A stretch of DNA of 64,000 nt from Klebsormidium nitens (GCA_000708835.1 DF237287.1:36656-100655), one strand, 5' to 3'. Numbered from the stretch's first letter, positions 7,106-63,037 are shown. Program-made: numbers and translations. Notes: generated from the letters alone by a model not told the origin.

Positions 7106-7142
7106 GTTCAAGTTTCAAGTTTCAAGTTTCAAGTTTCAAGTT
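7106..7142. repeat. Heptamer tandem repeat (TTTCAAG/AAGTTTC) x about 5
   Basis: Read directly: ttcaagtttcaagtttcaagtttcaagtttcaagtt; two more units at about 53951-53965. Confidence 0.85.
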
Positions 7143-7150
7143 GGAACGAC

Positions 7151-7507: not shown

Positions 7508-7586
7508 TCTACTAGTACTGGTTGGAACAGTACGTTCAGATGTCTACAGGACCAGAAACTTGAAAGGACGCTCTGGTAGGTAGCTC

Positions 7587-9398
7587 ATGCTCATGCTCAT
7601 GCTTGATTGTCAAGAACTTGAAGCTCCTGACAGTGAGATCAGATTTCTGAACGCTACTCCGCTGGAAGCAATGCCCAGTCAGGGACCAAACCACCCTCAT
7701 GGCCAACCCTGGCTGTCTGCACACATGGGCAAGCCACACAGGAAGGAGGCTGCAGCCAATACTGTAAAGAGTGAGCTGCTAAAACATCCGCCCCGTCAAG
7801 AGACGTTGCAACAAGAGCTGGAGAGGGAAGCCAGAGTCGAAGCGCACACGAATGAGCAGATTGCGAAGCTGGAAGATATAGTCAGCAACGAACGAAGAGA
7901 GAGGGTGAGAATGCATTTCAATTCTGTGAAGCACACAGATCAACTTCCATGGATGCTAAGTAGCAGGCAATTGACAGAGAATGTCTGCAGGCATTCATAA
8001 AGATACCATCCAAGTACACAGAATGGTGACCATCGGATGCTTGAGCCATCTGTATTATTTGTTATGCCCCTCATTCAGGACAATTCCTAAGTATGAGTGT
8101 CATGCTTCAAAAACTAATAGCTAGGCGAGCAATGTAGTTTCTCCAACAAAATATTAGCCCCTATGAAATCAACTTTAGCGTTCTGGTAGCTGTTGAACTG
8201 TCCAGCTGAGGGGGTTTCTCATCAGTCTCTAAAAGTTTGTTAAATGGCCCACCATTTGCCCCCAGGACCATCAGCTTCCCTTTACCATCGGCATTGAGAA
8301 TGTGTGCACCTTGTGCACTAGCTATCAGCGAAGAGTCTATTTGCTATTGAAAATGACATTGATGATTTACTCTGCAGGCTGATCGAAGGGCAAAATTGAA
8401 GGAAACTGGCCCAGTCCCTGCAATCAAACAGGCTCTTGCACGGGGTGAAAGTAAGTGAGGAGTTTAACTTGTACACCATGGAAGATTGATGCCAACCCAA
8501 AATACGAACACTGATTGAAGGTGGCTACACGCTGCGTGCTGGCTCCCGCAGCAATCCTGGAACGGCTGCGCAATAGTGACATGGTTAAACTGTACATATC
8601 AGGGTCCTTCTGCTTCAGTGGTCACGCTGCAGAGTAAGAAAACCTGTTGCAAGCCTTGTAGCTCCTCCAGACTCCATGTGTTTGAAGGTAGGAAGTAAGC
8701 TATTGACATCAGGCATTCGCCGCGTCAGCTGATGCCTGAAGAATACAGACAGAAGGACTGTGTACAATGTGTCATGTATAGTATCGGTCTTTTACGAGTT
8801 ACAAGAATCTGACTTGATCATATGAGGGCCCTTGGAGAAGATGTTTGCATAGTACGAACTCTCGAGCTGCGTTGAAGATCCGTGAATCATTCTGGTCATC
8901 TTGATGAACAATGACTAATACTAGGTATGGTCGGAGATCATGTCGCTTGGGACTGTCACTGTGCACCACATCATGACAATTGATATGGCGGGGCCGATCA
9001 GGCCCCTATATGAGGCGCATGCCGCCAGACTATCGATGATCCTGCATGTGTTTAAAGCAACGATCGATATGCTCAAGTTGAACCAAGCACGCGTGAAAGC
9101 ATTTGGCGCGTTCCATGGTCATGCTCAAAAATGGAAATCCGCAATAATGATCATGTGCACTCAAAGCACCGTCACGATATTGTGCGCATGGCCAGCACGT
9201 ATGGACTCATGTACACCTTCGCGATGTTCAATTCTAGATGGACCATGCAAAAAAGTAAAACATATACTATCTCTTCAAGACGTGGGCCCGATGCATTCCT
9301 ATGCAACAACATTGTTTCGTAACATAGCATCAACTGAGCTTGAACGGGGCTTGAACCGCGCTAAATTCTATCAGGACTGGATAGGAAGAGATTGCTGA
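7587..9398 (+). other. Unassigned degenerate coding-like region (possible transposon relic or pseudogene)
   Basis: 137-aa and 152-aa ORFs plus canonical-looking splice sites (e.g. 8378-8450) that do not join into an open frame; only a weak AFGAFHGHA motif. Confidence 0.25.
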
Positions 9399-9524
9399 GC
9401 AAATGATATAGTCAACTTAAGCAAGTTCCTCGAACGAGTATTGTCGTGAATGAGAGTCGGACATTGCGCCCGAGCCTCAGGGCCATCTAACAAAACTCAA
9501 TCAACATTGGTCTGCATGCCTAAG

Positions 9525-43348: not shown

Positions 43349-46300
43349 CTACTTGAGGAAAAACTTGTAGCTGAAGAGGCCTTCCCCGGCTCCCGACCCG
43401 CTGAGTGTGGTAATCTCCACGCTGCCCTTCGCCTTTTCGTACTGGCCCGCCCCACCAATGATGGCGACCACTTGCGTGTTCTTGCTCGTGTAGATGCCCT
43501 GTCATCAAGCGAAAGTAGACGCAGTGAGGCGAGGGAACGGGCGCTGCCCTTCTTAGAAACGAGATTAGCGGCGAGGCTGATGAGGTAAGCGTGTGGATAC
43601 TCTTTGGCTCGCTTTCAATAATGTGCGGGAGAAAGGAAATTTGGTCGAGTCCGGCTCCTTTGACAGACTCGGCTTGTTATCAGGTTTGTCAAGCAGAAAT
43701 ATGGCCTCTCATACTCTTGGCTGTGCCTTGACCTGAACACACGACGGTTGCACCGTTCGAAAAGCGGCGTTCGTGGCACTTGGTGTTCAGACCTTGCGAA
43801 GCTCTCAATCGGCAGACGCGGTTCCGTTCTCAGTCCGTTCCGTTCTTCTTTTATTGAAATATGTCCGGGGCATCTTGTCGGAATAGGCCTCGAGTTTTTC
43901 CTTGGAGATCACGTGTGCACGTAGGCGCGTCACGAACAATGTTTTAGGGGACCGGGGCGACTCAAAGTGCAGAACGGAAGAGCCAACGCGGAGAATCGCA
44001 ACGCAAAAAAGAAGACCAAAGGAAGTGGAGTGAAACGGAACACTGAAAAGACTCACGTAGATGACGAGATAATCGGCGCCGATGTGGATCGTGTCGAGGC
44101 AGATGAGCTCGAACTTGCCGTCGTCGAGAGGTCCCACCAGGTACACGCACGTCCCAATGTCGAACCCGATGGCCGTCGAGTTGTCGCTGGTGCTGAACAG
44201 GTTGTTCCTGCAATGCAAACAAGCAACCCGGTAAGGAGGGGCTTGTTTCTGTGATGAAGCGTTTCCAGATTTGGCTGTTGCCTTGGGCGAACGAGTGCGT
44301 TTTGCACAGAGGGGCAGCGGTGCAGGACGGGAGAGCATCACTCCAGAACTAGTAGACTTGAAAAAGTCTGAACCGAAGACTACGAACTAGTCGACAGATC
44401 GTTCCGCCTTGAGACAATGGAGGAAGACGACGTGATGAGACGGTTCCTGGCGGTTCGCTTCGAGACTCTTCTCGAGGGCCTTGACTCATTCGTTCGGATG
44501 CTTTCTCAAGTCTGTACGATCTTTTGAGGTAGTTCCGCAAGGATTCCGAGCTGAAAGAAAGCATAGAATGGGAGATTGACAAGGACTAAGAGGACGGCTG
44601 ACCTGAAGATGAGGAGAGCCCCGGCGGCCTGGGACGTCTCCGAGTTCTGGATCTCCCTCACCTCAAAACTGGCAGGGCTGCGGAATGAAAAGCACACGTT
44701 TAGGATACTCGGAACCAGAGCAAAATTTGAGGTAAAATTTACAGTGAACTGATTCAACCTGAAGCCGGATTTGCCCGCAAACATGCCAGATGCATGGGAA
44801 TAAAAGTGGAGAGCCAGTTTGTATGGAGTTAGATTGACCTCCAAACGGAACGAAGCTGCTGATTGCGGAGCTTGAAGACTTGCGCACTGGTTGGACGCTT
44901 CGAAACTGGATTCGATGGGATCAAGGAATACAGCTGCTCAAAGGACTGGATCCTTGTGGCGCGTTCGACGATACACGTTGACCGGCCTGACGTTGGCACC
45001 GCGCGCTTCGTAAGTGGCACAAACCAGACAATAACACGGCGTCCCAAAAGCCGACAGGTAGTGCTGTCAGGTCGCCAAACGCTAAGGCGTTGCGAACTGC
45101 AAGGAGCCCGAAAACAATCTGCCAATCCCTCTTGGACGACAAGGGTAATCTGTAGATTTGAAATTTTCTTCCGTGTCACCAAGACTCACCCCTGGCTGGA
45201 GGGCAGAACCGGGGGGATCCCCTCGGTGGCCAGCAACTGGTCCTTGGAGTACTGGGCAGTGTTGGGCTGGGGAAAGGGGCTCGGGGCAACGGTGTAAATC
45301 TGCACAAATGGGGATCCGTAGCTTTAAGATAAGCCGTACCGAAGCCTTACTGGAAGCCGTATGCAAATGAGGCCAGGTGTGATTGGCAGCATCGAGACGC
45401 TGAAGCTTACGCAAGTCGAGCAGTAGAGTCATCAGCAGCTCAACAGGCTTAGGAAGAATGGAGCAGGAAACAGAGGCCAAGCAGACCCACTGAGGCGAAC
45501 TCAAAGTGGAGAAAAAGACGGTCGATGCTTCAGGCTGAGTGAACATGAAGGGCAGATAATGCTTCCGCTGCCAAAACCAAGATGGAAGACGATTGAGCAA
45601 GGAGCCCAAAATGGAAAGATGTGGAAAACCGACCTGGTACTGGAAATCTCCGAAGGCACCCCCCATGTCGCTGGTGCTGATGGTGGTCAGAACGATGCGC
45701 CCGCGCGCGCCGCTGTAGATTCCGTACCCGCCGGTCACTTCGAGGTCGGCCACGTTGGCGCTCGTCAGCTTGCCCTGCACGAGGGAAAGGGACACTCGCT
45801 GACGTCAGACGTGCTGACGTCGAAGTACCTGGTGACGTTGTAAGAGCTCGTCTTGCTGCGTGCAAACGGCACCTAAGGGCAAAGCAGACGGCTAAAGAAC
45901 AGGATTATGAGAGTTGCGGTAGTCTCGGGAGGAGATGCAACCCGTACATTGCATACCCGTTGAGAAAAGTAGCAGAATTTGATGTACGGAGAGCAAAGCA
46001 GATTGGTATACGGCTCCGGGATGTGGTTCTAAAAAAGGTAATGCATATTTCTGTGATGTGAAATCACAAAAGGAGACATGACGCGTTTCTTCTCGAGTAC
46101 AGCGGCTAAGGAGCTGAAACCAACGACTCTGTTCGAAACTCGGCTTAAAGCTAACGGAGAAAGGCGTGAGATTCGTACCGCAGCAGTGATGAGGTCCGCG
46201 CCCAAGTGGATGCTGTAGAAGCAGAGGCCCTCAAAAGTCTGGTCGGCTTGGAGCCCGACGGAGTAGGCGCACGAACCAAGCGTGTAACCGATGGTGGTGC

Positions 46301-47800
46301 CATCTAGAGAACGCACTTCATTCCTGCAGTCATAGAGACGAAAACGCTGTGATTGGAGAAAGGCTCAAGACATTTCCCTCGAATCATGGACATTCGGGTT
46401 TCGTTATGTTCATGATTATGACCTGAAGAAAAAGACGGGGTTGCAAAGAGCTCAGGAAAACCAATGTTACTGCCGTCTCGGATTGGGTGATCCCAACAGG
46501 TTTCAGGAGCGTTTTTGCTCACATGAGCAAGAAGCTCGCTTTGAGTGACTAGCTATCAATGCCTGAACCTAGTCAAGCAGTTCTTTGCATTTCTCATACT
46601 CTCTGATCTGTTGCAATTGATGAACGGCCTGCTATTGTCAGTAGTACGTTAGAAGCTGAAGTTTCTAGGCTTCCAGTGGGAAAGTCAGAACCATAGGTTG
46701 GATTGGTTTGCCAGTCACGTATAATTGGCGTTTGACACTAGGATTGAAAGCAGAGCAGGGGCTTACCTGAACTTGAGGACTGTGCCAGGGACAGTGGGGT
46801 CACCGACGATTGTCTGGGTAGCCTCTGTGGCATACTCGATGAATTGGAGAGAAGGGGTCCTGTATGAAAAGGGTAGAATAACTCCAATGAGCCAGTTTGA
46901 CTTTACTGTAGTCCCTCAATGCTGTCGTGCACACGTTTTCAACAGTGGCCCATCAATGTTGCTCCTATCACGAAGAAATTGCACACGGACTGGGAGTTTG
47001 TCTAATCAAAGCAAGAGAAGCTAACGCAAGAGAACCTCTTACAACTGAATTAGCAGCTCCCTTGCAAGCACATTGCCTGTTGAACGATTCAGATTGGTTC
47101 AAACTGCTCACAAAGACGTTGCCTGCAGCTCAATACTCTTAACAACGGCAACGGCTGAAAATTCTCAATAAATTGTCACAATGCTGGGCCCTAGGACCTC
47201 ATCTTGAGCCTAAAAGTTTTAGAAGACCCTCGAGGCGTCAGTAATGAGAAGACGGACGTGCTGTTCAGAGTCTCATCATACAGTCGAGTCCCGATGCAGC
47301 TCTATCCACTTCCACTACCAAAGCTAAGCTACGTGAGGCTTGAATGCACAAGACGCTCTTGTATACTATCCTTGCATGAACATCTGTCTTGGGACAGTCA
47401 GAGAGTGAGCCAACCCTTCAATTTTGTACGAAAGGAACCATAAGCTGCACAGACCACACAATCTGAGACCCTCATACTGCATTCCGCCCTGCAACAAGTC
47501 AAGCGCAGTGAAACCCAACAAGCAGACAAGTTAATCAAAGAAGCAAACAATGTCCCCTTATTGCACGACACCTCACCCCGGCAGTGTGTTGGACCCCCCA
47601 TGAATCGCAGGGCAGGCGACATTGGCCTGCGGCGAACTCGAACACCCCCCGGGGCAGCACTCAAAGAAGTCCCCGCTCACAGAGTAGCACGCGTTGGGGT
47701 TCACGGAATTAGAACCGGTGTTGCAGTTGCTGCCAGCCGCGAGGCACACGTGGCTCACGGCCGCAACCAGGAGCAGAGCGAGCAGCACGGAGCGCGCCAT
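43349..47800 (-). CDS. Predicted secreted protein (about 362 aa): signal peptide + 6-Cys module + two tandem AOC/dirigent-like barrel domains (gene A)
   Basis: Exons 47800-47577, 46859-46767, 46323-46179, 45774-45634, 45299-45190, 44677-44603, 44207-44057, 43498-43349 join in frame via GT-AG (1089 nt). Hydrophobic N-terminus MARSVLLALLLVAAVSHVCLA; barrel signatures IGYTLGSC / LEVTGGYGIYSGARGRI and IGFDIGTC / VAIIGGAGQYEKAKGSV. Confidence 0.8.
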
Positions 47801-49987
47801 TGTTGCAGAGTGCTTGGGAAGGAATCGGTTGCGGCTGTAGTGGAAGTGCCGCCTCAATGCGGGCTCGCAACAGCTGCCGGTGAGGTCAATGCCGGGCCGC
47901 AAAACTGTGGACGGGACAAGTGCGGCCGTATGGATACTGCTCAGCTGGATTAGGTAGGTACTCATGCAATGGTATCAGAAAAGCTACGCAGACGTAGGTA
48001 CCCCGTACTCTTGTAGGTGCCTTGACGAAAGGTATTCACCTTAAACCTACCGGTACCTGCCTACCTGTCTTGGTCCCTTGTACAGTACCTAACGGTATTC
48101 CTGAAAGTCGATATGGCTATCACAACGATCACTACCTTAGAATCTATGCAATTCTGTCGTTGTCGGCAAGACAAAACACGCATGGGGTTTGTTGAACATG
48201 ACCTAATCAGGTACCGTACTGTCAAGTTTTCAACAGCAGGTGACGAATGCTTTCCATGTTGTGCGTGTGTACGGGTTCAAGTTGGTACCAAATCTACCGA
48301 TATTTATACCAATGAGGTAAGGTTACGCTGCAGAAGACCGTATTACGTTGGATACAGAACTTGTCCACACACGTTTGAAAACATGACCCGTTGAAGTTAA
48401 GGGGTACAGGCAATTGAGTGACCCCTATTGGCTATGTGGGCTGGCACCAGTACGGTACCTATTACGAAACGGTCGTGATCGGTGGACAGCTAGATTCTAG
48501 ATTATCTACCTAGGTACGTCTGAGAAGAAGATACCATGATGCAAGCCTCCGAGTACCGACCGTAATACTTACCTAGGTACCCAGTACCCACTGACTGGCA
48601 CTACCTACCATATAGTACTTACCTACCTACCGTCCTACCGTACCAATGTGCCTGAGCTCAGTCTCAGCGAGTCAGCGCCGACTGTAGGATAGTACACTGT
48701 CAACAAGGTGTGTACGACGTGCATTCCAATTTCCAAGTGCAGATGATGTGCAGTACGGTAACTGTCGATCGGCCTCCGTACTCAGCGGAGTCACCCGACC
48801 CGTACCTTCCGCGGCTGCGAAGTAACGAAGCCTGGACCAGTACGGTATACCGTATAGGTAGTCGTCACGACTCACCAGACCGAGTTACAGTGGTTCTTCT
48901 GTTCCGCGGAACGCCGGACGTCCAAGGTTAGCGGCAGGGGGTCGATCTCACGAAAAATGAATAATCCCGAACTCAAGTGCCGGGTTTTAGGGTTTCGTGC
49001 CGGTAACCAGCGCAGCGAGGGACCGCAGCGACGGCTGAAGTCCTGGTTGAAGTTCAATCACGTCGGTTCAGTCGCTGTGACATGACGCCAGTGCTGACAC
49101 TTTGGAACGCCCACTTTAAGCGAACCTGGCTTCGTTTCAAGTTTAACCTGGCTTCGTTTCCAGTTACCTAACCGCGAAACTTCTGGGCCCGACCGTCAGG
49201 CGGAACGGAGCGGAACGGGGCGGAAGGCACACTGCATTGATTCAACACAGAAAGCATATAAAATAGCGTATATCCGATTGCAACGTCAAAGGCATGACGT
49301 TTTGACAGATTGTGATCACTGATTGGCTTTATATAATTCGAACTGGTAGCTTTGCTGACGTCGGCATACAACTTGAATATCATGCCTGTCAAATGGCCGC
49401 ACTTGTGTCGTCCGTCAAGGATCCTCCGCTGACCGCGACACGCCATGTGTACGAGGCCGATAAACTTCAGGAACGGGAGATGTCACGGATTTTTGTAACA
49501 ATGATGTCCTAGGTAACCGGTCGGACTTGCCGTCAGGTACCTACTGTAGGTAATCACATTGTACTAGGTACCTGCAGGAAAATGTCGTCCGTATCCTATT
49601 TGCATGTACTAATACCCACTAGGTACCCCTTCTGTACCTGCTTACGGTACCGAATGCAGATTACGGTACCTGGTTGAACAGTGGGGCTGTCTTGCACCTC
49701 TTTAAGCATCTACCGTACTACGGTGGTTACCGATCACACTACCCAGTACCTAGCTCACTCTGAAATTCAACACATGAGCGGGGCCCGTATTAGAGAGAGA
49801 CGTTGCCAGCTAGGAATGTTACCACTGGTGCGCAGAGTCAAAACGAGTGCGATCCCCTCGCTTCGTGTGCTTCCACCCTGCTGTTCGCAGCTCGTTTCAC
49901 AGCAAGCTCAACTGCCGCGCAAGGGCGCAGACTGCCGCAAACTCTACCCCTTCTCCACGCATTGCCACGTACGCTGCGCAAATTGCA
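47801..49987. promoter_or_regulatory. Shared divergent upstream region of genes A and B, GTAC-rich
   Basis: Manual count: 25 GTAC in 47958-48843, 10 in 49537-49749, only 1 in between. Confidence 0.5.
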
Positions 49988-52900
49988 ATGGCGGCAGGAA
50001 AGTTCGCCCTCGTGCTTCTGACGGTGGCGCTCGTCGCGTGCGGTTCCGCGGAGGCAGGCACTAGCCGGTTGTTGCTGCAGAGCAACTGTGTGCCTGGCAG
50101 CAGTAACCCCAACGCTTGGTGAGTGCAGCTCTAATCATGTGGCATCATGGAAGTGAGAATTTCAGGATAGACGTTTCTTCTTTTCTGGATGGCATTGGCC
50201 ATCTGACGCGGTAGAAGGTTGAGCTCCTCCCTGCGTGCCTGGTGCCAGCAACCCCAACACTTTGTGAGTGCAGCTCTAATGTGGCGCCCTTAAAAGCAGG
50301 ATGGGCTTTCAATTTTTCTGGATGACACTGGCTGTAGAATGCTGAGCTTCCCCTGCAGTCTTGCGCACGAGTTGCGAAATGTGGACGATATCTGGAGCTT
50401 TGGGATTGCGGTTGATGTGGTGCTTTTGAATTGATGTGTGTTCAAAGACCAGCTGGGACATGTCCGGATATGCGGCACGCATCCTTTTCTGCAACGTGTG
50501 GTGCCTCAACTCTAAGTAGTGGAAGTACAGATTCCATCACAGCACGAATTTAGCTGCTGTACAGCTTAACATGAGCCTCTTGATTGCTGTTTCTGAGCTA
50601 GCAAAAGGTGGCCCGTCGATTCAGTTTTGAAGATGCCAATTTGACAACATCCACAAAATCGTTCTCTGTATTTTTAACTCAATTGCAAAGGTCAGTTGCA
50701 ATGCAGCATGCGAGTAGAGGTACTGAATGCCTTGGTCTTTCAGGACCTTTTACGGGTCCAGTACAAGAGTTTAGTTGAACTGGCCTTGGCCAGTATTCAA
50801 CTCAACCAAGGCAATGTGATGCAGAAACGGTCGCCATTCTATCATTTGAACTCTTGGTAAATACTTGGTTCATTCACCCAGATTTGAGGAGTGGGTCCTA
50901 GCCAAATCTCTCAGTCCTTTGCTCCAACTAGGCGGTCTGAAAGACGGCCGGCTAATGGAACCCCAAACAATTCCGCTTTGTTTGACTCGGCTTCCTCGCT
51001 CTACCCCAGGCAGTCTAAAAGACTAGGGAACGTTGCTCAATCTCCAAACAAACCCGCTTTGGTTAACTGGACTCTCCCTTGACCTCTGCAGCTACAACGC
51101 ACCCGGAACTGCCTTCACCTGTTGCCCTGGATCCTGCACCAACAACCCCGGGCCTACCCCTGCTTGCCTGAATGCCGCCCCGACTGGAACGACCCCGGCA
51201 CCTACTTCCCCCCCAGTGAACGTCACCCAGACCGGGGGCCCGCCTCTTCCCAAGCCCAACAGGTCAGTTGCAGATAAGCTATATATGCTTATAAACCGGT
51301 TTTTGATGCGCTGTTACTTCTTCTGCTTCTTCTATCTGTCTTGCCTCTCAATGTCAGTTACGGTATTAATGCAATCGTTCGCAAAATGTCTGGCCTGAAG
51401 CGCACTTTTTGTCATGCCTCCTGATGATAATTTTAAATTCTTCAAGGTTGAGTGTCAAAGTAGAGAGTTTGAACCATCAACTCTATAAGGACCCTGCATG
51501 ACCCTCCATAATCCTTGGTACATCATTGGCCAATTCAGGAACAGCGGTTCACTGATTAAAAGTACTGAGCTGCTTTTGAATGCTGGCTTTGCCAACGCAC
51601 TCACTGCAACCTTTTTGTTCCCCAGTAATATATATTCGGTGGACGACAGCCACCTAAAAGCAGACGTCACGAGGGCCACCCACGCCAATCTATCCTGACG
51701 TGCTCTGCGGTATACTTAACCTCACCCGCTAACCAGGTTTGCGCCTCCACTTCTTCAACAGAACCCCCACTTCTAAATCACCGCGGTTCATCTTGACTGC
51801 TCTGCAGCAATACTGAACTTCACCCGCTAACCAGGTTTGGCCCTCCACTTCTCTAACAGAAACCCCACTTTGAACTTCATCTTGACTGCTCTGCAGTTTC
51901 CTTAACTTCACCCGCTAACCAAGATTGCCCCTCCGCTAACCCTACAGGACCCCCACTCTGACCTTCATTGAGGTTGCCACCCCCGCTTCCACGACCACCT
52001 ATGGTGACATCAACGCCCGGGGCGCCACAGTTTTCTACCGGTATGTCCCAGAATCTCGGTCAACAGGGCCGCACATAGCTCTGCCTCTCGCGCCGATTAC
52101 TTCACAGCTCACGTTGATCTCTGAATCAGTAGGAACTGATTGCAAATGAAAAGTTTTCGCCCATCCTTCCCTCGTCCAACTCCCAAAGCGTATTGTATCA
52201 AGAGTCAAAAGTAGTTTGTTTTGTTCTGCGCTCCTTAGAGTAGTTTGTGGCGAGATCATGGGACTGCTATCATGTCATCTTAGGGCTGTAGGGCGCCTTG
52301 ATCAGCTCGCTTTCAGTTCTCGCGTATAGCCGCAGACAAATTTGCAAGCCTTCAGGGCCATAAGCCAGTGTTTGAACCGCACGGCAGCAAAATAGTAGAG
52401 GCGTCTCCTGTCCTGAAGGCGAATTACGCCCATTGTGATCCTTATATGTAATCTGGATTGAAGACGCCCTCCCCAACCGCGAAGAAGGTCACCCGTCTTC
52501 ACATCTCGGATGGCTCTCAAGACTTGCAAATTGTTCTGGGCTTTCTTCTCTTTCCGAATCGCACACCGTTCACTCAGCAGGAACAATGGTCTCAGATTCT
52601 TATTATGGTTTGTCAATCCAGTCTCAGTATCCTTCTTCCGAGTCAAGACACTGTACAATAATTTTGAATTGCAGTGAGGCTGGACACTGTACACATGAAA
52701 TGCTGTGAGTCGGACACAGTCAAATGAGTCTGAACGGAGTAAGTCTGGACCCTGTACAGATGAATCTTCGTTACACAAAGTCTCGACATTGTACAGTCGA
52801 GTCTGAATTGCAGTGAGTTTGGACACTCTGCAAACGAAGTTTCTAAACCCTGATTTCCTCCGCGCAGGAACAAGGTGCTCGACACGCTGGGTGGTTCCCA

Positions 52901-53499
52901 GATCGGGTTCACGACGCAGATCGTGCGTCAGAGCATCGGCCCCAACGAGGTCCCCTTCGGGAACTTCGAGCAGGACACGCTCTACTACCTCGAGATCGGC
53001 TCAAGCACCGTCTTCGCTGACGTAAGCACCGCGAAATAGCCGTCCATTGCTGACGTAGTCGTCTGATAGTCGTCTACGCTGATGGACGATAAGTCCAATT
53101 GGTGCTTCTCTAAGCTGACGCGAGAGAAGGGTGCTGCAGTCCCGATGACGTCAGGCCTTCGCATCGAGAGGCATGAGGATTTGATCGTCCCAAGGTACAG
53201 TCGTGCGTGGGCTTCGAACAATGATCAGTCACCCTTAGGGACGTTCTTACGCAAGCCTTTGATCGACCTCGCAATTCAAATTTTGCGGTGTATTGAAGTA
53301 GACTCAAACGCTCACAGTAACTGACTCGTGCAACCGTCTGTCGCTACAGGGGCTCTTCAGCCAGCAGACGTCGGCTACTCTGGCGATCATTGGCGGGACC
53401 GGTGACTTCAGTTTTGCGCAGGGCACGATCGTGGTCGACAGGGCGGGCACCGACAGCGCCGGCAACGTGCTGTTCAAGGGCGCGCTTTACCTTCCCTAG
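49988..53499 (+). CDS. Predicted secreted protein (about 232 aa): signal peptide + 6-Cys module + Pro/Thr linker + one AOC/dirigent-like barrel (gene B, paralog of gene A)
   Basis: Exons 49988-50118, 51092-51262, 51948-52040, 52868-53021, 53350-53499 join in frame (699 nt). MAAGKFALVLLTVALVACGSAEA; LAIIGGTGDFSFAQGTI; same intron phases and same 93-nt exon as gene A. Confidence 0.82.
51715..51900 (+). repeat. Tandem units of about 100 bp that copy the downstream acceptor and exon start of gene B
   Basis: aacttcacccgctaacca occurs 3 times; ctaacag-aaaccccactttgaacttcat resembles the real ctacag|gacccccactctgaccttcat (51948). Confidence 0.75.
52647..52830. repeat. Degenerate minisatellite in gene B intron 3
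   Basis: tgaattgcagtgag..tggacact twice and gacactgtaca-like units repeated. Confidence 0.55.
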
Positions 53500-55659
53500 A
53501 CAGAAAATACTGCAACTTTGACTGATCTAGAAAATTTTGTGGTTGAATTTCGAGCTTTTTGGCAGCTAAGGTTGCTCACGCAAGTGATCATTGAACGTGT
53601 AACCTCGCTTCCGACTCGTAAATAAGCCGGGATGAGTACAACTTGACATTCAAATCACAACTTTGTCGGGAGGTAGTTTGTTCGCACTGAGCAATTGATC
53701 CAACAAAAATTTGGGTCCTACACGATCTTGAAAAGCCTGAACTCCATGATAGTGTACATGGCCCGTGTACGCACGCCTGCTTGACGCGCATGTGCATGTT
53801 TATATTGAACCGTACCATCACGGGCCCACCATGGTCTCCGTGCCGCCGCCGCGGCGCGTCGAGGCAGTCATGACACACGCCGGGGCTGATCGTCTAGATA
53901 ATCTGCCGAATATCCATATCCTTATATGCTCGGTCGGGTACATACGTGTTGTTTCAAGTTTCAAGTGTCCCGGCGCGCGATCGGGCATGCTCACATGGCT
54001 GATCGCTATTCTACTTGAAGCATGATCCGATTGATCAATTAAGTCGGTTTTCGGTACATGCACGCGCAGCATAACATGCCACAATATATACACGATTGTT
54101 GGACGCGGCCCATCATGCAGTGACCATCTACTTGTAAGTAGACCGATTATGATGTCGGCGCCATAAAATCAGGCGCGGCCACCCTGGTACCACGATGCGC
54201 ATTCCAAAACATTGTGCTTCGTATGGTGCGTCTACCAGACGTCCTGTTATATGTGGCTCTTCAACACATCCCAGCTATCATATGATCACTCCGAGTCAAT
54301 ATTGCAGTATTTGCAGCTCAATTGTCTGCCTAGCATGCCTCAGAACTCCGGGATTGAATGCATGGCCGTTGGACGAGCATTCCGCAGGCCAAATACTTTC
54401 TCACACGACCATAATACGTCTGAAACCGAAGAAAAGCAGATTGCCAGCTCAAATAAGGGATGATGTGCGGAGACCGCAGTCCTACGACCTTGAACGAGTC
54501 AGTATATAAGATGAACACCTTCGATGCTTCCCAAAATTGCCACCATTCTCATCCGCACCAATCCGGCTTCTTGCCGCTGCGCAGTATCACTACCTTGCAA
54601 ACCGCTTGCCGGCGTTCATTGAACGAGCGCCTCAACGATCATCCCGCATTCCCCACCACTCCTGCTGTGCTTAACCAAACCCATCTGCCAATCACACCCA
54701 GCTTCCCCCAGGCCCTTTCCCCGACCGCCCACTAGCGACGCACCACCTTGTGCGGCAGCCCCGGTGCAAATCCTTCAGGTGACGTTCCGAGGCCACGTGC
54801 TTCACCAGCCCAATCCAATCTGACTGTTGCCCCTCGACGTGCTCGCCGCTCGTCCCAGTGTAAGCACTGCGCTTTTACGCCTACCGCATTACCTCAGAGT
54901 CTTGAACGAAAATGGGTGCGGAGTCGCGCTTGGCGGCCGTCAGCTCGGGGGTGTCGCGCCTGGTTTTCTGCGATGGGCGAAGCATGGTGACGTCTGTCGG
55001 TGAATGGAGCGTAGACCTACGGTGAACGGCGCAGGCTTTCCGCTGGAGGGCGTTTGAGAACCCTGACCTTTGGGTTCACATGTTAACGCCCCTGCGTATC
55101 GGCATTGAGTTGAGGGACCAATCTGAAAGCAATCTTGTCAACATTATCGAGAAAAGTTTGCCCCGGATTGTGGTGGTAGAGCAGGCGTTCCCCTTTGTTC
55201 TGCCAAAAGAACCACTGAGCAGCTTTTCAATGCACTCATGCTGTCTGAGGTCGTAGGTTGGTCACGGCTGAAGTCTCCAGATGATAAGACATGCAGCCTC
55301 GATTGCTTGCCAAAAGAACGAAAGGAGCAGATGCAGGACCAGCTGATCAAGAATTGCAGATGATTATCGGCAAGTGCACAACCGCACTGGGAATACCTAT
55401 TCACAAGATGAGCGGTCGACATAGGTGCTACGTCAAGCAGACCTGTGACCGCCTCCTCAACCGAACCAAGTCAAAGACAAACCCGACTTTGTAGGAGGCG
55501 ATTGACCGCCTCGCTTTTCTACTTACAAGCGCCATCACGTCTTCCAGAAGCCCTAGCGGACGGAGACTTGGTACGAAGCGGATTTCGATATTGTTTTCGG
55601 ATGTCTTGGGAAAAGGTGCTATTTCGAGTCAGCAAAGCGAGAGGTTCCGAGCGAGCGCG

Positions 55660-58600
55660 TCAGACCCGTACCGTTTTCGCACTTTGCTTCAGCTTCTTCT
55701 TCGCCCCTAGTGCGCCTCCCTTCCCGGCCTTCTTCCCCGGGCTCAGCACCCCCCTCCCCCTCCCAACCGCAGCTGGCGCCCCCGGCCCTTGCCCCCCCGG
55801 CAGGGGAAATTGACCGCCCGCCCACTGCCCGGGGGTAAGCGGAGCACCTTGCGCAACACTCTCCTGGAACCCCCCGAATGCAGCCGTGCCTTGCAGGGGG
55901 TGCCCGCCGGCAGGGAAGGCGCCCCCCGGAACCGCGGGAAACAGGCTTTCGGCAGTCGGCGTGGGCGAGACTCCAAACGCGGTGTCGGACGTTCGGACCC
56001 GTTTGACGGCTGGGGCGGGGTCTGGCTCGGAATCGCTGGCGGGCCGTTTTGCGGACGGCGGGTGCGGCGGGGGGGCTTGGGCTGGTTGGGCGTGCCACAT
56101 CTGGTCCATCATTGGCTGCGTGAGCAACGATGTTTGCACGTCAAACGTTGGGACTACTCATAAGCTTTCTGCTGAACGGCAGGGACTGGACATAGGAAGG
56201 CATGTCGATTCCTCCTGTCTTTATACGCCCATCAGTTGAAGGCGGGAGCAGCAAAATTGCAGGGAAGAGAGCGTCAATGCAGCACCCTTGGAACGAGTCG
56301 AGCGGCCACGAGAGATCTATATGAGAAGAGGTCTCATACACTCAAAATTATTTTGTCACTTTCTATCAATTCCACAATCACCTGATGTGGCACTTTACGG
56401 ATATCAAGTCATGGAAGCAACCCCCTTTAAAGGCGCGCCCGCACGTCGCCGCTTGAAAAAACCATGGCCTCGGTTTCACCTTCGGCAAACCGCCTCGGAC
56501 AGCAGTAACGAGCACTTTGCACTTCGGACCGCGCGTCGTTCGCTTTGCTTTAGAGATCCAGATTCACCATTGCGGATCAACGTTGCAAGTAACAAGCCCA
56601 GTCCTGAACGCTTCCCATTCGTTACAATGAGGGAAGCAAGAACCTCAGGCTCTTTATCAAGTCCTGAAGAACGGACAAGTGACAACTTCCGAAACCTGCT
56701 TTGAGGATTCTACGAGGATCGCCCGCATCAGCTACAAGAGTCCTTCATGCGTCTCCAGACGAGGGAGGTAACCAAGCCTAAAAGTAACGGTTCCAGGAAC
56801 GCAAACTCACCTTGCGCCGGATCGCCTCCTGCGACGCATGCTGCTTTGCCACCTTCTTGGACGGGCCCGAGGCAACCGCGACCGGGACCCCGTCCACCTT
56901 GACCTGAAACGTGAACGTCTTCTTGTGGGGGGGTCCCTCTGACGCGAGCTCCTCAAACTCGACGGCCTGCCCGTGGTAAACGTTACGGACTTCCTGCATG
57001 GGGGGCGGCCGGGAAGGGCGGGGGGCGTTTTGCTGCCCAGGAACGGGATGCGGGGGGGCGGGGTGGCCCTGGTTGGGGAGACCGGGGAGAGGTACCGGCC
57101 TGGACCAGGAAAGGAGCGTAGCGTTAGAAATGTGGATTCAATAGGATGCACCACGAAGCATTTTTTCCTTCAGGAAAAGCGATGGTGGCGAAAACGAGCA
57201 CAGCTTTTCTGGAAAGCGCATCTACTTGTAAGGACGTGCTTCTAGAAGCGTGTCTAGATTTCCGTATTCCTTGATTGTCGAAGCCTCTTGGTAGCACGCT
57301 GTTCATTTCGTAACATGCGATGAAGCAATTACCCGTACTCTGCCCTGAAGTTGCCGGGACGCGAAACCTTTTGTGAAGTACGTGTGATTCGGGGGGGTTT
57401 GTGCGGAGTCGCTCCGACCTCCTACGGAAATGTGAGAGCGCCACAGAATGCACGCATCGCAGCCCGTAAGGCGTCCTACACGTCCGCAACTATCGGCAAC
57501 CAAAGAAAGATATGGCAAATGCAACCTCGATAAAGTAACAACGAGCTCCGGCTGCTCACCTGGACCCCCCCTGGCCCTGCAGCATCTCCAGCACCTGCCG
57601 CGCGCCGTTGTGCTTCGCCAACCGCTTGTTCGGCCCGTGCCCCTCCCCAACCACCCGCCCCTGCATCAGCACCTGCGCCGTGACCGGCGGACCGTTCGCC
57701 ACCTTGATGAACCGGTACGTAACGTCCCGCCCCATGCTCCGCCCGAGCGTGTGCAGTTCCGTTAGCACCTCCCGCTTCCCGTTCCCTGGCTTTGCCGATC
57801 CCGTTTCCGCGTCAAACCCCGGGGCCCCGCTCGTGCCCGGCTGGTCCTCGCCGTAGCTGTCATCCGCCAGCGCCCGGAAGTCGAGGCCGCCGAACAAGGC
57901 CCCGGCCGCGGCCTGCGCGCCAAACGGCCCGTCCGACGCCGCGAAGCTCATCGGCTCGTCCGAACTCGGCGCGGGCTCTTCGTCCATAGGCTCCACCGAC
58001 GCGCTCCGGCTCGACGGGATCGAAGGGATCCCTCCGTCGTCCCCGCTCGCCAGGGCACCTTCCTCCTCGCTAAGCAGCTCCCCCTCCTCGACGCCCCCTT
58101 CGACAGCCGCTTCCGCTTCCTCCCGCTGCTTGGCCCTCTCCTGCGCGCGCGCTCGCTCCGCGGACGAACCCGACGAGAACGACCCGCCCTCCTCCCCGCT
58201 GGGGTAGTCCTCCGCGCCGCCGCCCGCCTCTAGTTCGTCGCCGGAGTCCTTACCGCCTTCGGAACCGTTACCGCCCTCGAACGGCTCCTCGTCGTCCACT
58301 TCCGGCTCCGATGGATCGTCGCTTCCGCTCCGGTCGTCTGCCGGCTCGACGTGATCGGGAGGAAATTGATGTTGCACCCGGGGCGACGGCCGAGCCTCCC
58401 AGAGTCCTGGCATGCCTGGGGGAAGTGCGCGGGGGAAGCCTCGGGGGGAAGGGAGCACGGGGCCGCCGCGCGGGGAGGGCAATCGGCCACCGAGCATGGG
58501 GAAGTGAGGTGGCTGGTTCTGCAGCGACAGACGACTCGAAATTTAGTCTGAGCCCTTATATCTGGTGCATAAGTCAACATCCACTAGAAGCAAAAAATGT

Positions 58601-61600
58601 GCTTTTAGGAATCTTGTTCTATCGAAAGGTCCACTTCGACGGGAGTCTGCCCGGCTTGTGCAGTAATGAAAAGCAATGCTCAGCCTTTGGCACGCTGCAA
58701 GCGTGCTTCTTCAAATCGGACGACTCGTTCGAACTCAAAAAATGGATGTACGGATTGGTTGGGTATATCAACAACTGCGAGAGCTGACGCAAAGTGACCT
58801 GTGAGACCTGCGACTCGTGCGAGTACGAGAAGCCTAGCCACAAACGAACCTTGAGTGTACGAAATCTTTGAAGCAAACTGCTGAACCGGGCAGTACCGAC
58901 GGACTCAAGGGGCCCGGACAAAACCTCATCAAACAAACAGGAACATTTCCAGACAGAGACTTACATACGAAACGAAGCACCCATTCATTTACAGGGCTTG
59001 CAGACGTCAACCCAGTTACAGCCAAGCGCTTACAGCCTTCTGAGACGGACAACCGCAAGTGGAGAACTCCCCCACGTCTGTCGGTCCGGGAGGAATACCC
59101 GTTCCACGATGAATTTGTTCTCCGAGACCAGTCAGTTCATATGGAACGAAGCGTGACCCCCTTGTAGGGCTTGTTCTTGAGCTCCTCACGTCACAAGAAG
59201 CGCAACCCCCCTTGAGTATCTTCTGCCGCTGCTCCTGAAAGACTAGTCGTCGACAATACGACTTACTTTAAAACCAGACGCTAACGACAAAACGAAGCGC
59301 GCTTTACCTGTTGCAGGGCCTGTTGCAGACGCGCCTGCTTTAAAACCAGACACTAACGACACAACGAAGCGTGACCCACCTGTAGGGCCTGTTGCAGGCG
59401 CGCCTGCTCCTTGAGCTCCTTCTGCCGCTGCTCGTGGGAGAATAGTCGTCAACGCTACAAGCTCTCAAAGACCAGTCAAAGAGAATAAGCCGAAGCGCGA
59501 CCCACCTGTAGGGCTTGTTGCAGCCGCGCCTGCTCCTTGAGCTCCTTCTGCCGCTGCTCCTGCTGCTGCTGCAGCCCCTGCACCTGCTGCATCATTGCCT
59601 GCAGCGCCCCGGCTGTCGCCGGCCGCGGCCCGGGGGGCNNNNNNNNNNNNNNNNNNNNGGAAACCCGGGGGAAGAGACGGGGGAGGTTTGGGCCCGGGGA
59701 ATGAGGACGAGGGCCGGGCGGCTCGCGCCTGCTCAATGACTTCGGGGGGAGGGGGACCCGGGGGGAGGGGCGGGTTGACCGGGGGCCGGGGTTGGGTTGG
59801 AAGGGGGGGGGGCTGTGGGTGCGCTGCGGGGGGGGGCTGGCCGGGGGGCGTGGGGGGCTTGAGAGGGGCCACTTGATGCTGCTGCTGTTGCTGGAGGTTG
59901 TACAAGGTCTGGAGACGAAAAGAAACGTGTTCAAACATTGTGAATTCGAGACATGCGTTATGAAACCGATTGACGGTTCTGTTTTCGTCGTGATTGGAAA
60001 GGGGTGTCGAAAGGACATTCATTTACGCTTATGGTTGGATAACGAGATCAGGCAGCTTCGTTTCTGGCCCCTGAACTTACTTCGGCCCGTCGCTTTTAAA
60101 TTTGGACAACTAAACTGACTTCGTTGTAATAACCGGAACCTTCTCGTAGACGACCCTAGAATTTCTCAAACGAAGATACAGGAAAAAGGCTCGGTTGGGG
60201 CTACTCAAAATGCATGATACTCTCTCCAACATCGCCAACCCTTGAAAAGCAAAAGTTTAGAGACTTCGAGTAGTTGTGTCAACACATTGGCACATAGAAA
60301 ATGGGACAATGGACGTTTCGAACACAGGTGGACGATGTGCCTACGACAGGTTGTTCGTACCCTAAAATCACCGACTAATTCCTTAAACAACGCTTTGCGT
60401 TGGATGTCTTTCAGGAGACACAAAAGTGGACGAACTCTTGGCAGGCACAAAGGAATGGACCGCTTGTAGTCTGTATGAGCTTTCGGATATAATCCTTCCC
60501 GCCGGTGGACCCACTCTTTCCTAAATTCGAGCGCCAAAAGAGGCTTTGACTCCAAATGCTCTGGTGTGTGTAACGAACGAAGAATGACTGACCTGGATCT
60601 GGGGAAGGATGGCCGCCAGTTGGGGGGCCGCGTTGACCAGCAGAGGCGCTGCTGCCAGCAAGGCTGCCAACTGCTCGTGAGTGATCTGTTGGCCCCCACT
60701 CAGACTGCTCAGAGCGTTCACGGCGTTCTGCAATTGTACGCCTTTGGCCGTGACACCATCCTGTTCGAGGGGGAAAAGAAGCCTTTTCAGAAGTATCCTC
60801 TGCCCATGCGGTCTGGGCGTCAACGATTCAAGTCCTGTTCAGGGGCTCGAGGAAGAGTGCAAGGAGTCGAATGATGTAAGATGTCCTCGAGCACAATCGT
60901 CATGATCTTTCACTTTGTTTCTCCAAAAGGTGTCCATCGTTGATCCATGAGGCAAGGGAGTCAAGCAAGACAACTGATGCCCTTTTTCTTCTCTACCTCA
61001 ATCTTTGCAGGAATAAGAGATGACTCCTTTAGGCAACAGGGACAAGGAATGAATCTTATCATACAAAAAGGAGAGATCGAAAGAGGGAGAGACCCATTCG
61101 TGCTGAGGCATCTGGAATTCCTCTTTGAATAGATCCGCCACCATATACGCTGAAGGAGGACTTCGCATCGTGGATTTCTCTAAGATTGATTGAGAATCGT
61201 TGTTTTTGCTTTCAAACAACAGGAAAGAGCCCTAAGAAAGAAGTTCGCAACAAGCCAAAAACTATTCCGCAGCCTCATGACAGCTTCACTTGCAATCTGC
61301 AAAAGCGGATTGAAAACCCACCTTCTCCCCTGTTGGCGCTGTCTCCTTCATGCGCTGAACGTCTGAACTCGTCCTCTGTGGCGGCCTCGACTCCCCTTGC
61401 CCGCTTGCCCCTTTTCCCTCCTCACTCCTTGCCTGAACGCCGTCGGACTCCGCCCCTTCTCCGCTGACTCCATCACTGACGGCATCCCCACCTTTGTCAT
61501 GCCCGTCTGTCTCCCCCTTCTCCATGGGAGCTGGCCCCTTGTCGGGCTCCTGCCGTTTCTCACCCCCCCCGGCAGAAGCGCTGGATACCTCGGGACCAGT

Positions 61601-63037
61601 GTCGCCCCCCATCGTGCTATCCTTTGTCCCGCTCTCCTCGCCGATCCTGGGCCCCTTCCCTAGTTGCGCCCGCTCCTCTGGCCCCGTCAGGCCGTCTGCG
61701 GCGCCCCCGATCGGCGCCAGGGGGAAGCTCGGTTCCGCCTTCAGGAAGGTGCTGACGTCAGGCCGTGGGGGGAGGGTCTTGGGGTCCGATTCGGGGGTCA
61801 GCTTCGCTACGGTTTGTACCAGGTCCTCGTCAACGTACTTGAAGTAGGCGGCGCGGGTGTTGTAGATGGCGTTGCGAGCCGTGTGCATCACGGGGAGCTC
61901 GAGGCCTTCTTCCAACCCGGGGTTGGAGTAGGGCGCGTACTGAGGGACGACGTGGACTCGGCTCTGGTCTTCCTCCTCCCACACCTTGAGCCGGTCGTCG
62001 ATGACGATCGCCATGGAGGGGTTGCAGCACACGCCCGAGAAGACCCCCAGGATCGACTTCTTGATGTCGGGACGCACGCACACTACGCGCTCCCGCAGGG
62101 CTCCCCACTCGATCAGGCGGCCCCCTGGGTCCAGCAGCCGCCACACCTCCCAGGCGTACTCCTTTTCGGATAGCGTGCACACAAACGGCTCAAAGCGCTT
62201 GCGCCCCTTGATCAGAATATACTCACGCAGGTCCTCCCAGAAGGGCCGGATCTTGATCAGCACGCTCGTGTCCCGGTTGGTGGGGTTGATGCGCGTCAGA
62301 ATGACTCCGTCAGGCAACCTGATGATTGGCCGCTGAAGAACGACACCGGGAGTGACTGCAGACGGCGCCTCCTCGTACTCAGCCTCAAACTCCTTCTCTT
62401 CAATAGTCACCTTGTTGCGATCCATGTAGTCCCTCAGCAGGTCTTTGTCCCTCTGTAGGCTTGCTGACTCGTCAGCGTACTGAGCCTGCTTCTCAGGGTC
62501 AGGCTCGGCCCTCAGCCTCCTCTCCGCGCTCGCAATGCGATCATCGAACGACTTCATTGTGTTGGCGATGATGAGTGTCTCATCAAGATCGAAGACTAGA
62601 GCCAGCGTGCGCTGGTTGAGCATATTGCAGCAGACAGAGTACTGGCCTGTCCTACAAACATAGGCCCAGAAGTATGGCCTGGACTCCGTCGACTCTACTG
62701 CGACCAGGTGCAGTTCCCGTCCTTCGATGTGGACAAAGAGGCTCTTCCTGTCTTGGATACAGGAGTTGTGCACAGACTTGAACTCTGACCAAGTTGATTC
62801 ATCAGCAGAAAATGGAGTGACTTTGAACAGCACGCCAACCTCGCAGATTGTGTGCAGGATGACCTGGGGGGAGAGCCTATCACTGGGGATGGAGAAGGTG
62901 GAGAGTTGAATGGAGGGAACAAACCGCTGGATTAACCAGTTCACATCCATGGAGGACGTGAGTAAGGCATTTGTTAGCAGTTTGGGGCCAAGAAGAATGT
63001 CAGTCCGGAGAATCACCGTGTTGTTTGCCATGTTCAA
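55660..63037 (-). CDS. CPL1: RNA polymerase II CTD phosphatase-like 1/2 (FCP-type phosphatase + two dsRNA-binding motifs); middle exons and 3' end approximate
   Basis: LNQRTLALVFDLDETLIIANT (DxDxT), VIDDRLKVW; dsRBMs ...VTAQVLMQGRVVGEGHGPNKRLAKHNGARQVL (about 57560-57770) and ...GPPHKKTFTFQVKVDGVPVAVASGPSKKVAKQHAS (56811-57100). Confidence 0.88.
59145..59432 (-). repeat. Degenerate copies of a CPL1 exon 3' end plus donor
   Basis: AAGGAGCAGGCGCG.CTGCAACA.GCCCTACAG|GTGGGTC.CGCTTCG at the real donor (59506) and at 59380; more decayed copies near 59310 and 59160. Confidence 0.8.
59639..59658. other. Assembly gap (20 N) inside a G/C-rich Pro-rich CPL1 exon
   Basis: Run of N; the reading frame differs on the two sides, so the gap length is not exact. 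Confidence 1.

Follow-up and report, generated by a model that had tools for sequence, protein, structure and literature searches.

Two neighboring genes of Klebsormidium nitens, here called A and B, lie head-to-head and are divergently transcribed (A on the minus strand, B on the plus strand) within the 64,000-nucleotide stretch of DNA that was analyzed (the window, whose numbering is used throughout), and it is probable, in our estimation, that they form a conserved pair of paralogues for secreted proteins in which a cysteine module is joined to bacterial-type barrels acting outside the cell on a small molecule. Klebsormidium is a streptophyte alga, and thus an algal relative of the land plants, while dirigents and allene oxide cyclase (AOC) are usually treated as inventions of land plants tied to lignin/lignan chemistry and jasmonate synthesis.

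Results

The coding region of gene A (KFL_003380120) spans 43349..47800 on the minus strand in eight exons (47577-47800, 46767-46859, 46179-46323, 45634-45774, 45190-45299, 44603-44677, 44057-44207 and 43349-43498), with seven introns, all GT..AG, of phases 2,2,0,0,2,2,0; the joined exons give a translation identical to the 362-aa public protein P0001, which had been retrieved by a word search. Gene B (KFL_003380130, GAQ87208.1) occupies 49988..53499 on the plus strand in five exons (49988-50118, 51092-51262, 51948-52040, 52868-53021 and 53350-53499) with intron phases 2,2,2,0, and its spliced coding sequence translates exactly to P0004 (232 aa). All four junctions of B are present in RNA-derived contigs of three studies, a single contig of 1129 nt covering its five exons, and the junction of exons 1 and 2 of A appears in RNA contigs as a loose end matching the start of exon 2; the A contigs measure 1614-1625 nt, a length that an unspliced transcript would exceed. 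The two divergent spliced genes proposed in the initial annotation are thereby borne out. The same annotation held them to be invisible as whole units, which is true of a prokaryote-style list of open reading frames only, as the public K. nitens genome carries annotations of both genes and both proteins stand in GenBank and UniProt under the automatic name "Dirigent protein". Our literature search found no paper naming KFL_003380120 or KFL_003380130.

RNA contigs define a 5' UTR for A at 47801..48039 (minus strand, contig ends at 48035-48039) and for B at 49784..49987 (plus strand, contig starts at 49784-49841). Between the divergent transcripts lies a shared upstream region of about 1.75 kb (48040..49783), over which the RNA contigs have a depth of 0 from bin 48150 to bin 49749 in all four runs. 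The pairing of the genes as divergent neighbors is confirmed, and both are found in the same RNA assemblies; neither is present in the twelve zero-share runs, which come from six other studies. The words of A and B are all but missing from half of the runs of the same species, and expression of the pair looks conditional. Co-expression was judged from contig depths in four runs, in which B exceeds A by about 1.2- to 3-fold, contig depth being a poor measure of expression.

In gene A, exon 1 (47577..47800, minus strand) encodes a signal-peptide-like segment (aa 1-22) and the six-cysteine module (Cys26, 38, 48, 49, 53 and 63, with the first to sixth cysteines at 47612-47725), and barrel 1 begins within about 12 residues of the module. 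This first barrel (aa 75-201, with a Cys124/Cys140 pair) is encoded by exons 2-4 (45634..46859, minus strand), followed by exon 5 (45190..45299, minus strand), which supplies its last strand residues and a Pro-rich inter-barrel linker (8 Pro within aa 203-242). Barrel 2 (aa 238-362, with a Cys283/Cys299 pair) is encoded by exons 6-8 (43349..44677, minus strand), contains a single N-x-T sequon at aa 272, and ends at the stop codon 43349-43351. In gene B, exon 1 (49988..50118, plus strand) encodes a segment resembling a signal peptide together with the opening third of the module, breaking off inside the codon of its second cysteine; exon 2 (51092..51262, plus strand) encodes the remainder along with a Pro/Thr/Ser-rich linker that has 9 Pro in 34 residues and N-x-T sequons at aa 87 and 100. 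A single barrel (aa 101-232; 51948..53499, plus strand) occupies exons 3-5. The one barrel of B and the two of A, as first described, are borne out by the gene structures and by the barrel alignment. Two introns of B carry repeats of their neighboring exon borders: inside intron 1 lies an unused copy of the end of exon 1 with its donor (50222..50292, plus strand, 83% identical to 50078-50150), for which no joint was found among the RNA contigs, and ahead of exon 3 the acceptor region and exon start occur in three tandem copies of about 90 nt each (51700..51985, plus strand), of which only the third is used (AG at 51946-51947).

Both N-termini contain hydrophobic 11-mers (Kyte-Doolittle 3.0-3.4) with small residues ahead of the probable point of cleavage, and by this hydropathy heuristic the signal peptide first ascribed to both proteins is plausible. 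No second hydrophobic segment occurs in A or B, the mature proteins are acidic, and an even number of cysteines remains once the signal peptide is taken off (10 in A, 6 in B). As such, A and B look to be secreted by way of predicted signal peptides, to the extent that a hydropathy heuristic can indicate. The module itself, of 36-38 residues, follows the spacing C-x11-C-x9-CC-x3-C-x9-C in A and C-x9-C-x9-CC-x3-C-x9-C in B; the six cysteines of the two proteins align, and their framework is kept, as far as covered, in both orthologues on L001, a metagenome contig of a Klebsormidium-like organism, so that the claim of one module common to both proteins stands. Its C-C-CC-C-C order is that of the knottin or inhibitor cystine knot type, and the module is probably disulfide-knotted, a prediction beyond which its fold and any binding role are guesses, given that AF2 confidence on it (pLDDT 35-48 in context and 52.8 alone) is too low for a I-IV, II-V, III-VI disulfide knot or a small beta-sheet core to be read. 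No match to the module was found in Pfam, among PDB sequences or in 1.84 billion proteins, and none, by sequence or profile, to lectin or chitin-binding families. We read it as a lineage-specific tag of this Klebsormidium lineage.

The three barrels share 26-36% pairwise identity, and exon-to-codon mapping gives the same two introns in each, one of phase 2 that splits an Arg codon before Asn and one of phase 0 immediately ahead of the last barrel exon, whose first codon is Gly, precisely as had been proposed. Their assignment to the AOC/dirigent beta-barrel also held. Against Pfam Dirigent (PF03018), A scores 34.0 bits summed over its two barrels, above the cut-off of 29.1, while the single barrels (barrel 1, 16.7; barrel 2, 24.9; B, 24.3-25.9 bits) fall below it. 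The cut-off of Pfam AOC (PF06351; 31.2) is not reached by A (26.0), barrel 2 (19.5) or barrel 1 (15.4 bits), and that of AOC_like (PF18678; 25.9) is just missed by A (25.4; barrel 1, 21.7 bits), B having no hit in either case; no barrel alone attains any Pfam cut-off. The AF2 model of B has a pLDDT >90 over residues 100-232 and adopts the eight-stranded antiparallel barrel of AOC and dirigents. Foldseek matches this barrel to AOC with E 1.5e-6, among 62 matches at E<=1e-3, and VIA-align returns 94 chains at Z>=8, the listed top ranks being occupied by families of the AOC-barrel superfamily (AOC, dirigents, PodA and AbyU/PyrI4-type cyclases). In both A and B a first-strand Glu is conserved in every barrel; the catalytic residues of AtAOC2 include a first-strand Glu, and the family-profile alignment to AOC begins after that strand. 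The two barrel cysteines found in A and in nearly all aligned single-barrel relatives are missing from the barrel of B, which has lost them.

The pyocyanin demethylase PodA (5k21) ranks first both in the structural comparison of the B barrel (Z 16.6, with 118 residues at an rmsd of 2.4) and in the family-profile search (7.5e-17, ahead of AOC at 2e-15 and DRR206 at 1e-10), and the closest relatives by sequence are bacterial-type barrels, all of which would suit extracellular enzymes whose inactivation of phenazines and other redox-active metabolites of bacteria would shield a soil alga from its bacterial neighbors. We regard such a role as very unlikely. Most of the weight in the family profile comes from metagenomic and bacterial-type sequences, and the structural scores are tied within about 1.5 Z, the barrel of B matching pyocyanin demethylase, dirigents, AOC and Diels-Alderases about equally well (Z 15-16.6; PsPTS2, 16.1; pterocarpan/isoflavene synthases, 16.0-16.1; AtDIR6 and AOC, 15.0). 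Among the structural matches is also OsJAC1, a chimeric jacalin of rice, by its dirigent domain (7ywe/7r5z, Z 14.6-14.8), which reportedly binds carbohydrate, and hevein- or knottin-type peptides bind wall or microbial polysaccharide. A and B might by analogy be lectin-like proteins of defense or of the wall, the barrel binding carbohydrate and the cysteine module a wall or microbial polysaccharide with no conversion of a small molecule, a reading with which their seemingly conditional expression, nearly absent from half of the same-species runs, and the existence of plant dirigent-plus-lectin fusions (PMC11893575) are consistent. However, the barrel fits enzymes and dirigents equally well as it does OsJAC1, and the module is without a match to any lectin or chitin-binding family; we consider this reading rather unlikely.

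The fold and the weak profile scores also suggest AOC, and K. nitens has been reported to possess AOS and to synthesize OPDA and dn-OPDA with no AOC orthologue found (bioRxiv 10.1101/2023.02.03.526968), such that A and B could be imagined to supply the apparently missing activity. We hold this to be extremely unlikely. The signal peptide, disulfide module and Pro-rich linkers are indicative of the secretory pathway, whereas the AOS product arises in the plastid; A scores below the cut-off of Pfam AOC; and OPDA formation does not strictly require AOC (bioRxiv 10.1101/2023.02.03.526968).

An exhaustive search of 1.84 billion representative proteins at E<=1e-3 returned only 20, among which there was no recognizable land-plant dirigent. 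Outside the Klebsormidium-like lineage the hits are metagenomic proteins of single or multiple barrels, labelled "allene oxide cyclase" or "dirigent-like" by IMG, and one diatom protein; three-barrel single chains occur among these relatives (P0007, and P0010 from the diatom). The nearest structure clusters of the ESM Atlas are mostly from Actinomycetota, Chloroflexota and Planctomycetota. Judged by these resemblances, we read the barrels as more closely akin to bacterial "AOC-like/dirigent-like" proteins than they are to true AOC or the dirigents of land plants. On L001 both orthologues are present, likewise head-to-head, and conservation with the K. nitens DNA is confined to exons. Every part of the pair is under purifying selection, with omega about 0.1 (0.10 for A, 0.14 for B and 0.12 for the exons of the cysteine module, at dS about 1.3); exon 5 of A, which encodes the linker, is 90% identical in L001.

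Discussion

The initial annotation presented A and B as a functional system, a claim that we do not retain, the simplest reading being that of two paralogues from an inverted duplication. The tethering role that it gave the cysteine module and the stereo-directing or cyclase role that it gave the barrels we keep as proposals only. Such a duplication would have left the genes head-to-head, and a later duplication within A, of a phase-2/phase-2 cassette comprising the barrel and linker exons, may have produced its second barrel. It is nonetheless worth weighing whether the two proteins work as one unit, with the 2+1 barrels assembling into a three-barrel pseudo-trimer that mimics the homotrimers of related families (as in the solved PodA, AOC and dirigent entries 5k21, 2brj and 5lal, respectively) and the divergent promoter keeping the chains in step. 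The barrel count, the head-to-head layout kept in L001 across a dS of about 1.3, the presence of A and B in the same runs with the absence of both from the twelve zero-share runs, and the three-barrel single chains among relatives are all in accord with such an assembly. Yet adjacent inverted paralogues are expected to remain linked without physical interaction, and the contig depths, with B in excess of A, give no pointer to a 1:1 stoichiometry; we therefore judge the arrangement improbable. Little credence is likewise due to its fuller form, a two-chain extracellular machine in which the split pseudo-trimer, held at the wall by lineage-specific knottin-like modules, would have as its extracellular substrate a small molecule derived from a lipid or a phenol. 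Were it correct, and were the substrate an allene oxide or other oxylipin, it would bear on OPDA synthesis in an alga without a canonical AOC.

Returning to the paralogue pair of secreted proteins that we favor, it is reasonable to postulate that each would open with a cleavable signal peptide, followed by the 36-38-residue module, which would serve outside the cell as a stable tag for binding or anchoring and not as a catalytic part, this assignment being a guess. Beyond the module, B carries a Pro/Thr/Ser-rich linker that is probably glycosylated, whereas in A a Pro-rich linker separates the barrels. The C-terminal part consists of eight-stranded barrels of the AOC/dirigent superfamily, a single one in B and two in A, whose pocket may take up a small molecule of hydrophobic or phenolic nature outside the cell, like that of dirigents and their enzyme relatives.

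The description of these proteins as undescribed must be narrowed. Both are in GenBank and UniProt, the barrel superfamily is known, tandem dirigent domains and dirigent-plus-lectin fusions occur in land plants (PMC11893575), and bacterial dirigent-like proteins have been described (PMC9344732); however, no description of a six-cysteine module joined to AOC/dirigent-type barrels was found in the literature, and it is the cysteine module and the gene pairing that appear undescribed. The pair so far reveals no new mechanism. What it indicates is that Klebsormidium, reportedly without an AOC orthologue, has a small, diversified set of apparently secreted, bacterial-type barrels of the AOC/dirigent superfamily, including multi-domain versions of the alga's own (tandem barrels and a seemingly private six-cysteine tag) that are kept under selection. 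A and B are thus concrete, expressible candidates for the role of such barrels before lignin existed.

Land-plant dirigents (PF03018; AtDIR6 5lal, PsDRR206 4rev and the pterocarpan synthases 6ood/6ooc/8th2) are likewise secreted eight-stranded barrels, with the same motif pattern (G-x-L-x-F-x-N ... G-G-x-G-x-[FY]) and VIA-align Z scores of 13.3-16.1. They are, however, absent from the 20 proteins that the exhaustive search returned, the single barrels of A and B lie under the Pfam cut-off, and to our knowledge plant dirigents do not have an N-terminal six-cysteine module. Tandem domains occur there as they do in A, but most plant DIR genes are intronless (PMC11893575), in contrast to the two introns per barrel found here. 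AOC (PF06351; 1z8k, 2brj, 4h6b) has the same fold (Foldseek E 1.5e-6, Z about 15) and, by profile alignment, F-x-N and G-x-C motifs in common with the family of A and B, but it is targeted to the plastid, whereas A and B have secretory-type N-termini and a disulfide module. The closest relatives by both sequence and structure are the bacterial dirigent-like/AOC-like proteins (PF18678; DIRL, Bardin et al. 2022, PMC9344732) and PodA (5k21), small secreted barrels with the two barrel cysteines that are shared by the barrels of A and absent in B; unlike A and B, the bacterial dirigent-like proteins described to date are single domains without a cysteine module (PMC9344732). Last, the monocot dirigent-jacalin chimera OsJAC1 (7ywe/7r5z) resembles A and B in joining a barrel to a second small domain of binding type in a secreted/defense context, but its partner is a C-terminal jacalin lectin, whereas that of A and B is an unrelated N-terminal six-cysteine module.

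Results

A and B are two expressed, conserved and paralogous genes whose products have signal-peptide-like N-termini and disulfide-type cysteine counts and, in the modelled protein B, a confident barrel of the allene oxide cyclase (AOC) superfamily. The sequence belongs to the nuclear genome of the streptophyte alga Klebsormidium nitens. Gene A occupies the minus strand in eight exons, from its ATG at 47800 to the end of the stop codon at 43349; all of its introns are GT..AG, with phases 2, 2, 0, 0, 2, 2 and 0, and its joined exons yield, on translation, exactly the 362-residue public protein P0001 (KFL_003380120), which was recovered at 100% identity by a word search with one gene A exon. Gene B has five plus-strand exons (49988-53499; intron phases 2, 2, 2 and 0) and translates exactly to the 232 residues of KFL_003380130 (GAQ87208.1, UniProt A0A1Y1IGD9; P0004). 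Exon concatenation was used solely to verify translation against the public proteins; the queries for searches were single exons, P0001 or P0004. The initial annotation, made from the sequence alone, had proposed two divergent spliced genes, and the exact translations bear this out. Its description of them as invisible holds for a prokaryote-style ORF list but not for the public annotation, where both are present, and where UniProt has automatically named each product 'Dirigent protein'.

Two small repeats were noted within gene B. Within intron 1, 50222-50292 repeats the end of exon 1 at 83% identity and with the donor intact (GTGAGTGCAGCTCTAAT); use of this copy was not found in the RNA contigs, and it looks like the relic of a small local duplication. 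At 51700-51985, spanning the end of intron 2 and the start of exon 3, a unit of about 90 nt that comprises the acceptor region and the first bases of exon 3 stands three times in tandem, and the third acceptor alone is spliced.

Transcription was assessed over 47550-53549 by mapping Logan contigs from four runs, which belong to three studies, with junction positions quoted after correction for the tool's cut offsets. All four junctions of gene B (50118|51092, 51262|51948, 52040|52868 and 53021|53350) were seen in RNA contigs; the third is absent from run X9, the other three recur in every run, and a single 1129-nt contig covers all five exons. For gene A the contigs cover 47576-48039 and continue into a loose end identical to the opening 30 bases of exon 2, so that the join of exons 1 and 2 is likewise supported; at 1614-1625 nt these contigs fit a fully spliced mRNA rather than 4.2 kb of genomic sequence. 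Low-depth contigs (22-30) run unspliced from intron 2 of gene B into exon 3 (51340-51973), as against a depth of 445-1095 for the spliced form, and are likely pre-mRNA or intron retention. The transcripts start near 48039 (A) and 49784 (B), about 1.75 kb apart, and run away from each other in opposite directions, with no RNA contig of the four runs mapped between the starts. Both genes occur together in twelve runs from three studies, and neither was found in twelve other runs bearing the same species label. This pattern, read from the presence and depth of contigs, fits an expression that is conditional and shared; the tool itself warns that both are poor measures of expression.

An exhaustive search of 1.84 billion representatives returned 20 proteins at E<=1e-3. 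Two of these are the K. nitens proteins themselves and four are exon-sized fragments of a relative's orthologue; the others are metagenomic proteins of one, two and three barrels at roughly 30-38% identity (labelled 'allene oxide cyclase' or 'dirigent-like' by IMG), and one protein of three barrels encoded by a diatom MAG. No recognisable land-plant dirigent is among them. The nearest structure clusters in the ESM Atlas are mostly bacterial, which agrees with the published bacterial dirigent-like proteins (PMC9344732). One of the fragments pointed to L001, a contig of 82 kb from a Klebsormidium-like organism in a JGI metagenome (sample 3300060285). At 486-13090 prokaryote-style gene calling had cut it into exon-sized 'hypothetical proteins', the database fragments P0002, P0003, P0005 and P0006. 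Its A and B orthologues lie on opposite strands, head to head as in K. nitens, and every exon is recognisable save the last of gene B, which falls outside the piece compared. DNA similarity between the two is limited to exons. Exon-by-exon comparison by the Nei-Gojobori method gave a dS of about 1.3, with omega at 0.10 in A, 0.14 in B and, over the exons bearing the cysteine module, 0.12; all parts, module included, are under purifying selection.

Each of the three barrels is built from three exons, and the introns sit at identical positions: one of phase 2 ahead of the first exon, another of phase 2 that splits the Arg codon in the R-N motif, and one of phase 0 directly before the Gly that opens the last exon. 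The R-N and Gly introns noted from the sequence thus recur in all three. Exons 2-5 of gene A (barrel 1 and the linker exon) form a phase-2/phase-2 cassette, which makes an in-frame duplication possible. Identity among the barrels is just 26-36% in pairwise comparison, which argues that the duplications are old. The B barrel is without, in exon 4 (52868-53021), the cysteine of the G-x-C motif and its partner, the two conserved strand cysteines that are kept in both barrels of A and in nearly all aligned single-barrel relatives; B has lost both.

By profile, protein A passes the Pfam cut-off for Dirigent (34.0 bits against 29.1) but not those for AOC_like (25.4 against 25.9) or AOC (26.0 against 31.2), and each single barrel, as well as the whole of B, falls under every cut-off. 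The AlphaFold2 model of B (27-row alignment) exceeds a pLDDT of 90 over residues 100-232. With this model Foldseek returned AOC at E 1.5e-6, together with pterocarpan-synthase dirigents, the pyocyanin demethylase PodA, AtDIR6, the dirigent domain of OsJAC1 and the cyclases PyrI4, PloI4 and Cyc15. The best VIA-align match was PodA (Z 16.6, rmsd 2.4, 118 residues), followed by dirigents, Diels-Alderases and AOC, all within about 1.5 Z; the family profile against PDB sequences gave PodA at 7.5e-17, AOC at 2e-15 and DRR206 at 1e-10. The AOC/dirigent barrel originally suggested is thus upheld as a fold at superfamily level but is not placed inside the plant dirigent or AOC families. That the proteins are detoxifying enzymes resembling PodA is very improbable in our estimation, while a role as lectin-like defence proteins we regard as simply unlikely.

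Three AOC-like barrels occur in single chains in P0010 (KAL3921501.1, Bacillariaceae sp. MAG) and P0007, two proteins returned by the search, so multi-barrel chains of the superfamily exist outside plants; the diatom protein also has a C-terminal hydrophobic tail. Such chains, and the trimeric state of the solved relatives, would accord with A and B assembling as a split pseudo-trimer. A complex prediction from the two A barrels and the B barrel, run without supplied family alignments, lent this no support (its score of 0.14 against a mark of 0.34 counts neither for nor against binding), and we think such an assembly quite unlikely.

At the N-terminus each protein has a strongly hydrophobic segment, after which come small residues, and neither contains a second hydrophobic segment; the signal peptides first proposed are thereby supported, by a hydropathy heuristic. 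Once this segment is removed, 10 cysteines are left in A and 6 in B, even counts as expected for disulfide-bonded extracellular proteins. These secretory features also bear on a further reading, that the barrels are the missing AOC of K. nitens, which is reported to synthesise OPDA while having no AOC orthologue (bioRxiv 10.1101/2023.02.03.526968). The features speak against it, and we consider it barely credible.

The six-cysteine module reads C-x11-C-x9-CC-x3-C-x9-C in A and C-x9-C-x9-CC-x3-C-x9-C in B. All six cysteines and the C-C-P-G-x-C core align, which confirms the module as common to both proteins. A phase-2 intron cuts the codon of its second cysteine in B, and A has no intron there. 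The framework is one we take to be that of knottin-type peptides. The linker after the module in B is rich in Pro, Thr and Ser and holds two N-glycosylation sequons; that of A, between barrels 1 and 2, is Pro-rich. The module matched nothing in Pfam (E<=1) or among PDB sequences (E<=10), gave no usable match by features in the ESM Atlas (the structure rows listed had TM<0.5 on a poor model), and among the 1.84 billion representatives the N-terminal region had no match outside the Klebsormidium-like lineage. Word searches with the B module alone and with P0001 each returned only the query, a result of little weight given their length window and word limits. Modelled in isolation (4-row alignment), the module reached a mean pLDDT of 52.8, too low for a fold search, and its region has no confident fold in the model of B. 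Two bacterial contigs (L002, L003) from a metagenome scan with the module alignment were rejected as spurious, since the match falls within a large ORF but on its antisense strand or in another frame.

Elsewhere in the window, minus-strand ORF pieces at 57559-58497 and 61289-63037, with a double-stranded-RNA-binding motif and a NIF/CTD-phosphatase domain, are probably one CPL-type phosphatase gene unrelated to the pair. Another minus-strand piece (33601-34014) weakly matches the start of a PARP regulatory domain (E 1.5e-4, below cut-off).

Discussion

We propose that an inverted duplication gave rise to the A/B pair and that an internal duplication of the cassette may have supplied the second barrel of A. 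Both proteins would be exported, and probably glycosylated; by analogy with their relatives, the barrels could hold a ligand that is small and either hydrophobic or phenolic, and the six-cysteine module would stabilise or anchor the protein, most likely as a tag for extracellular binding or attachment. Taken as a whole, this set of propositions is in our judgement somewhat more probable than its negation.

The claim that the architecture is undescribed stands in part. Within the literature we found no paper naming KFL_003380120 or KFL_003380130, no account of AOC/dirigent-type barrels that carry a six-cysteine module, and none of a conserved gene pair with two barrels and one. The genes, on the other hand, are already known, as are their fold and superfamily, and for plants there are records of dirigent domains in tandem and of dirigents fused to lectins (PMC11893575).
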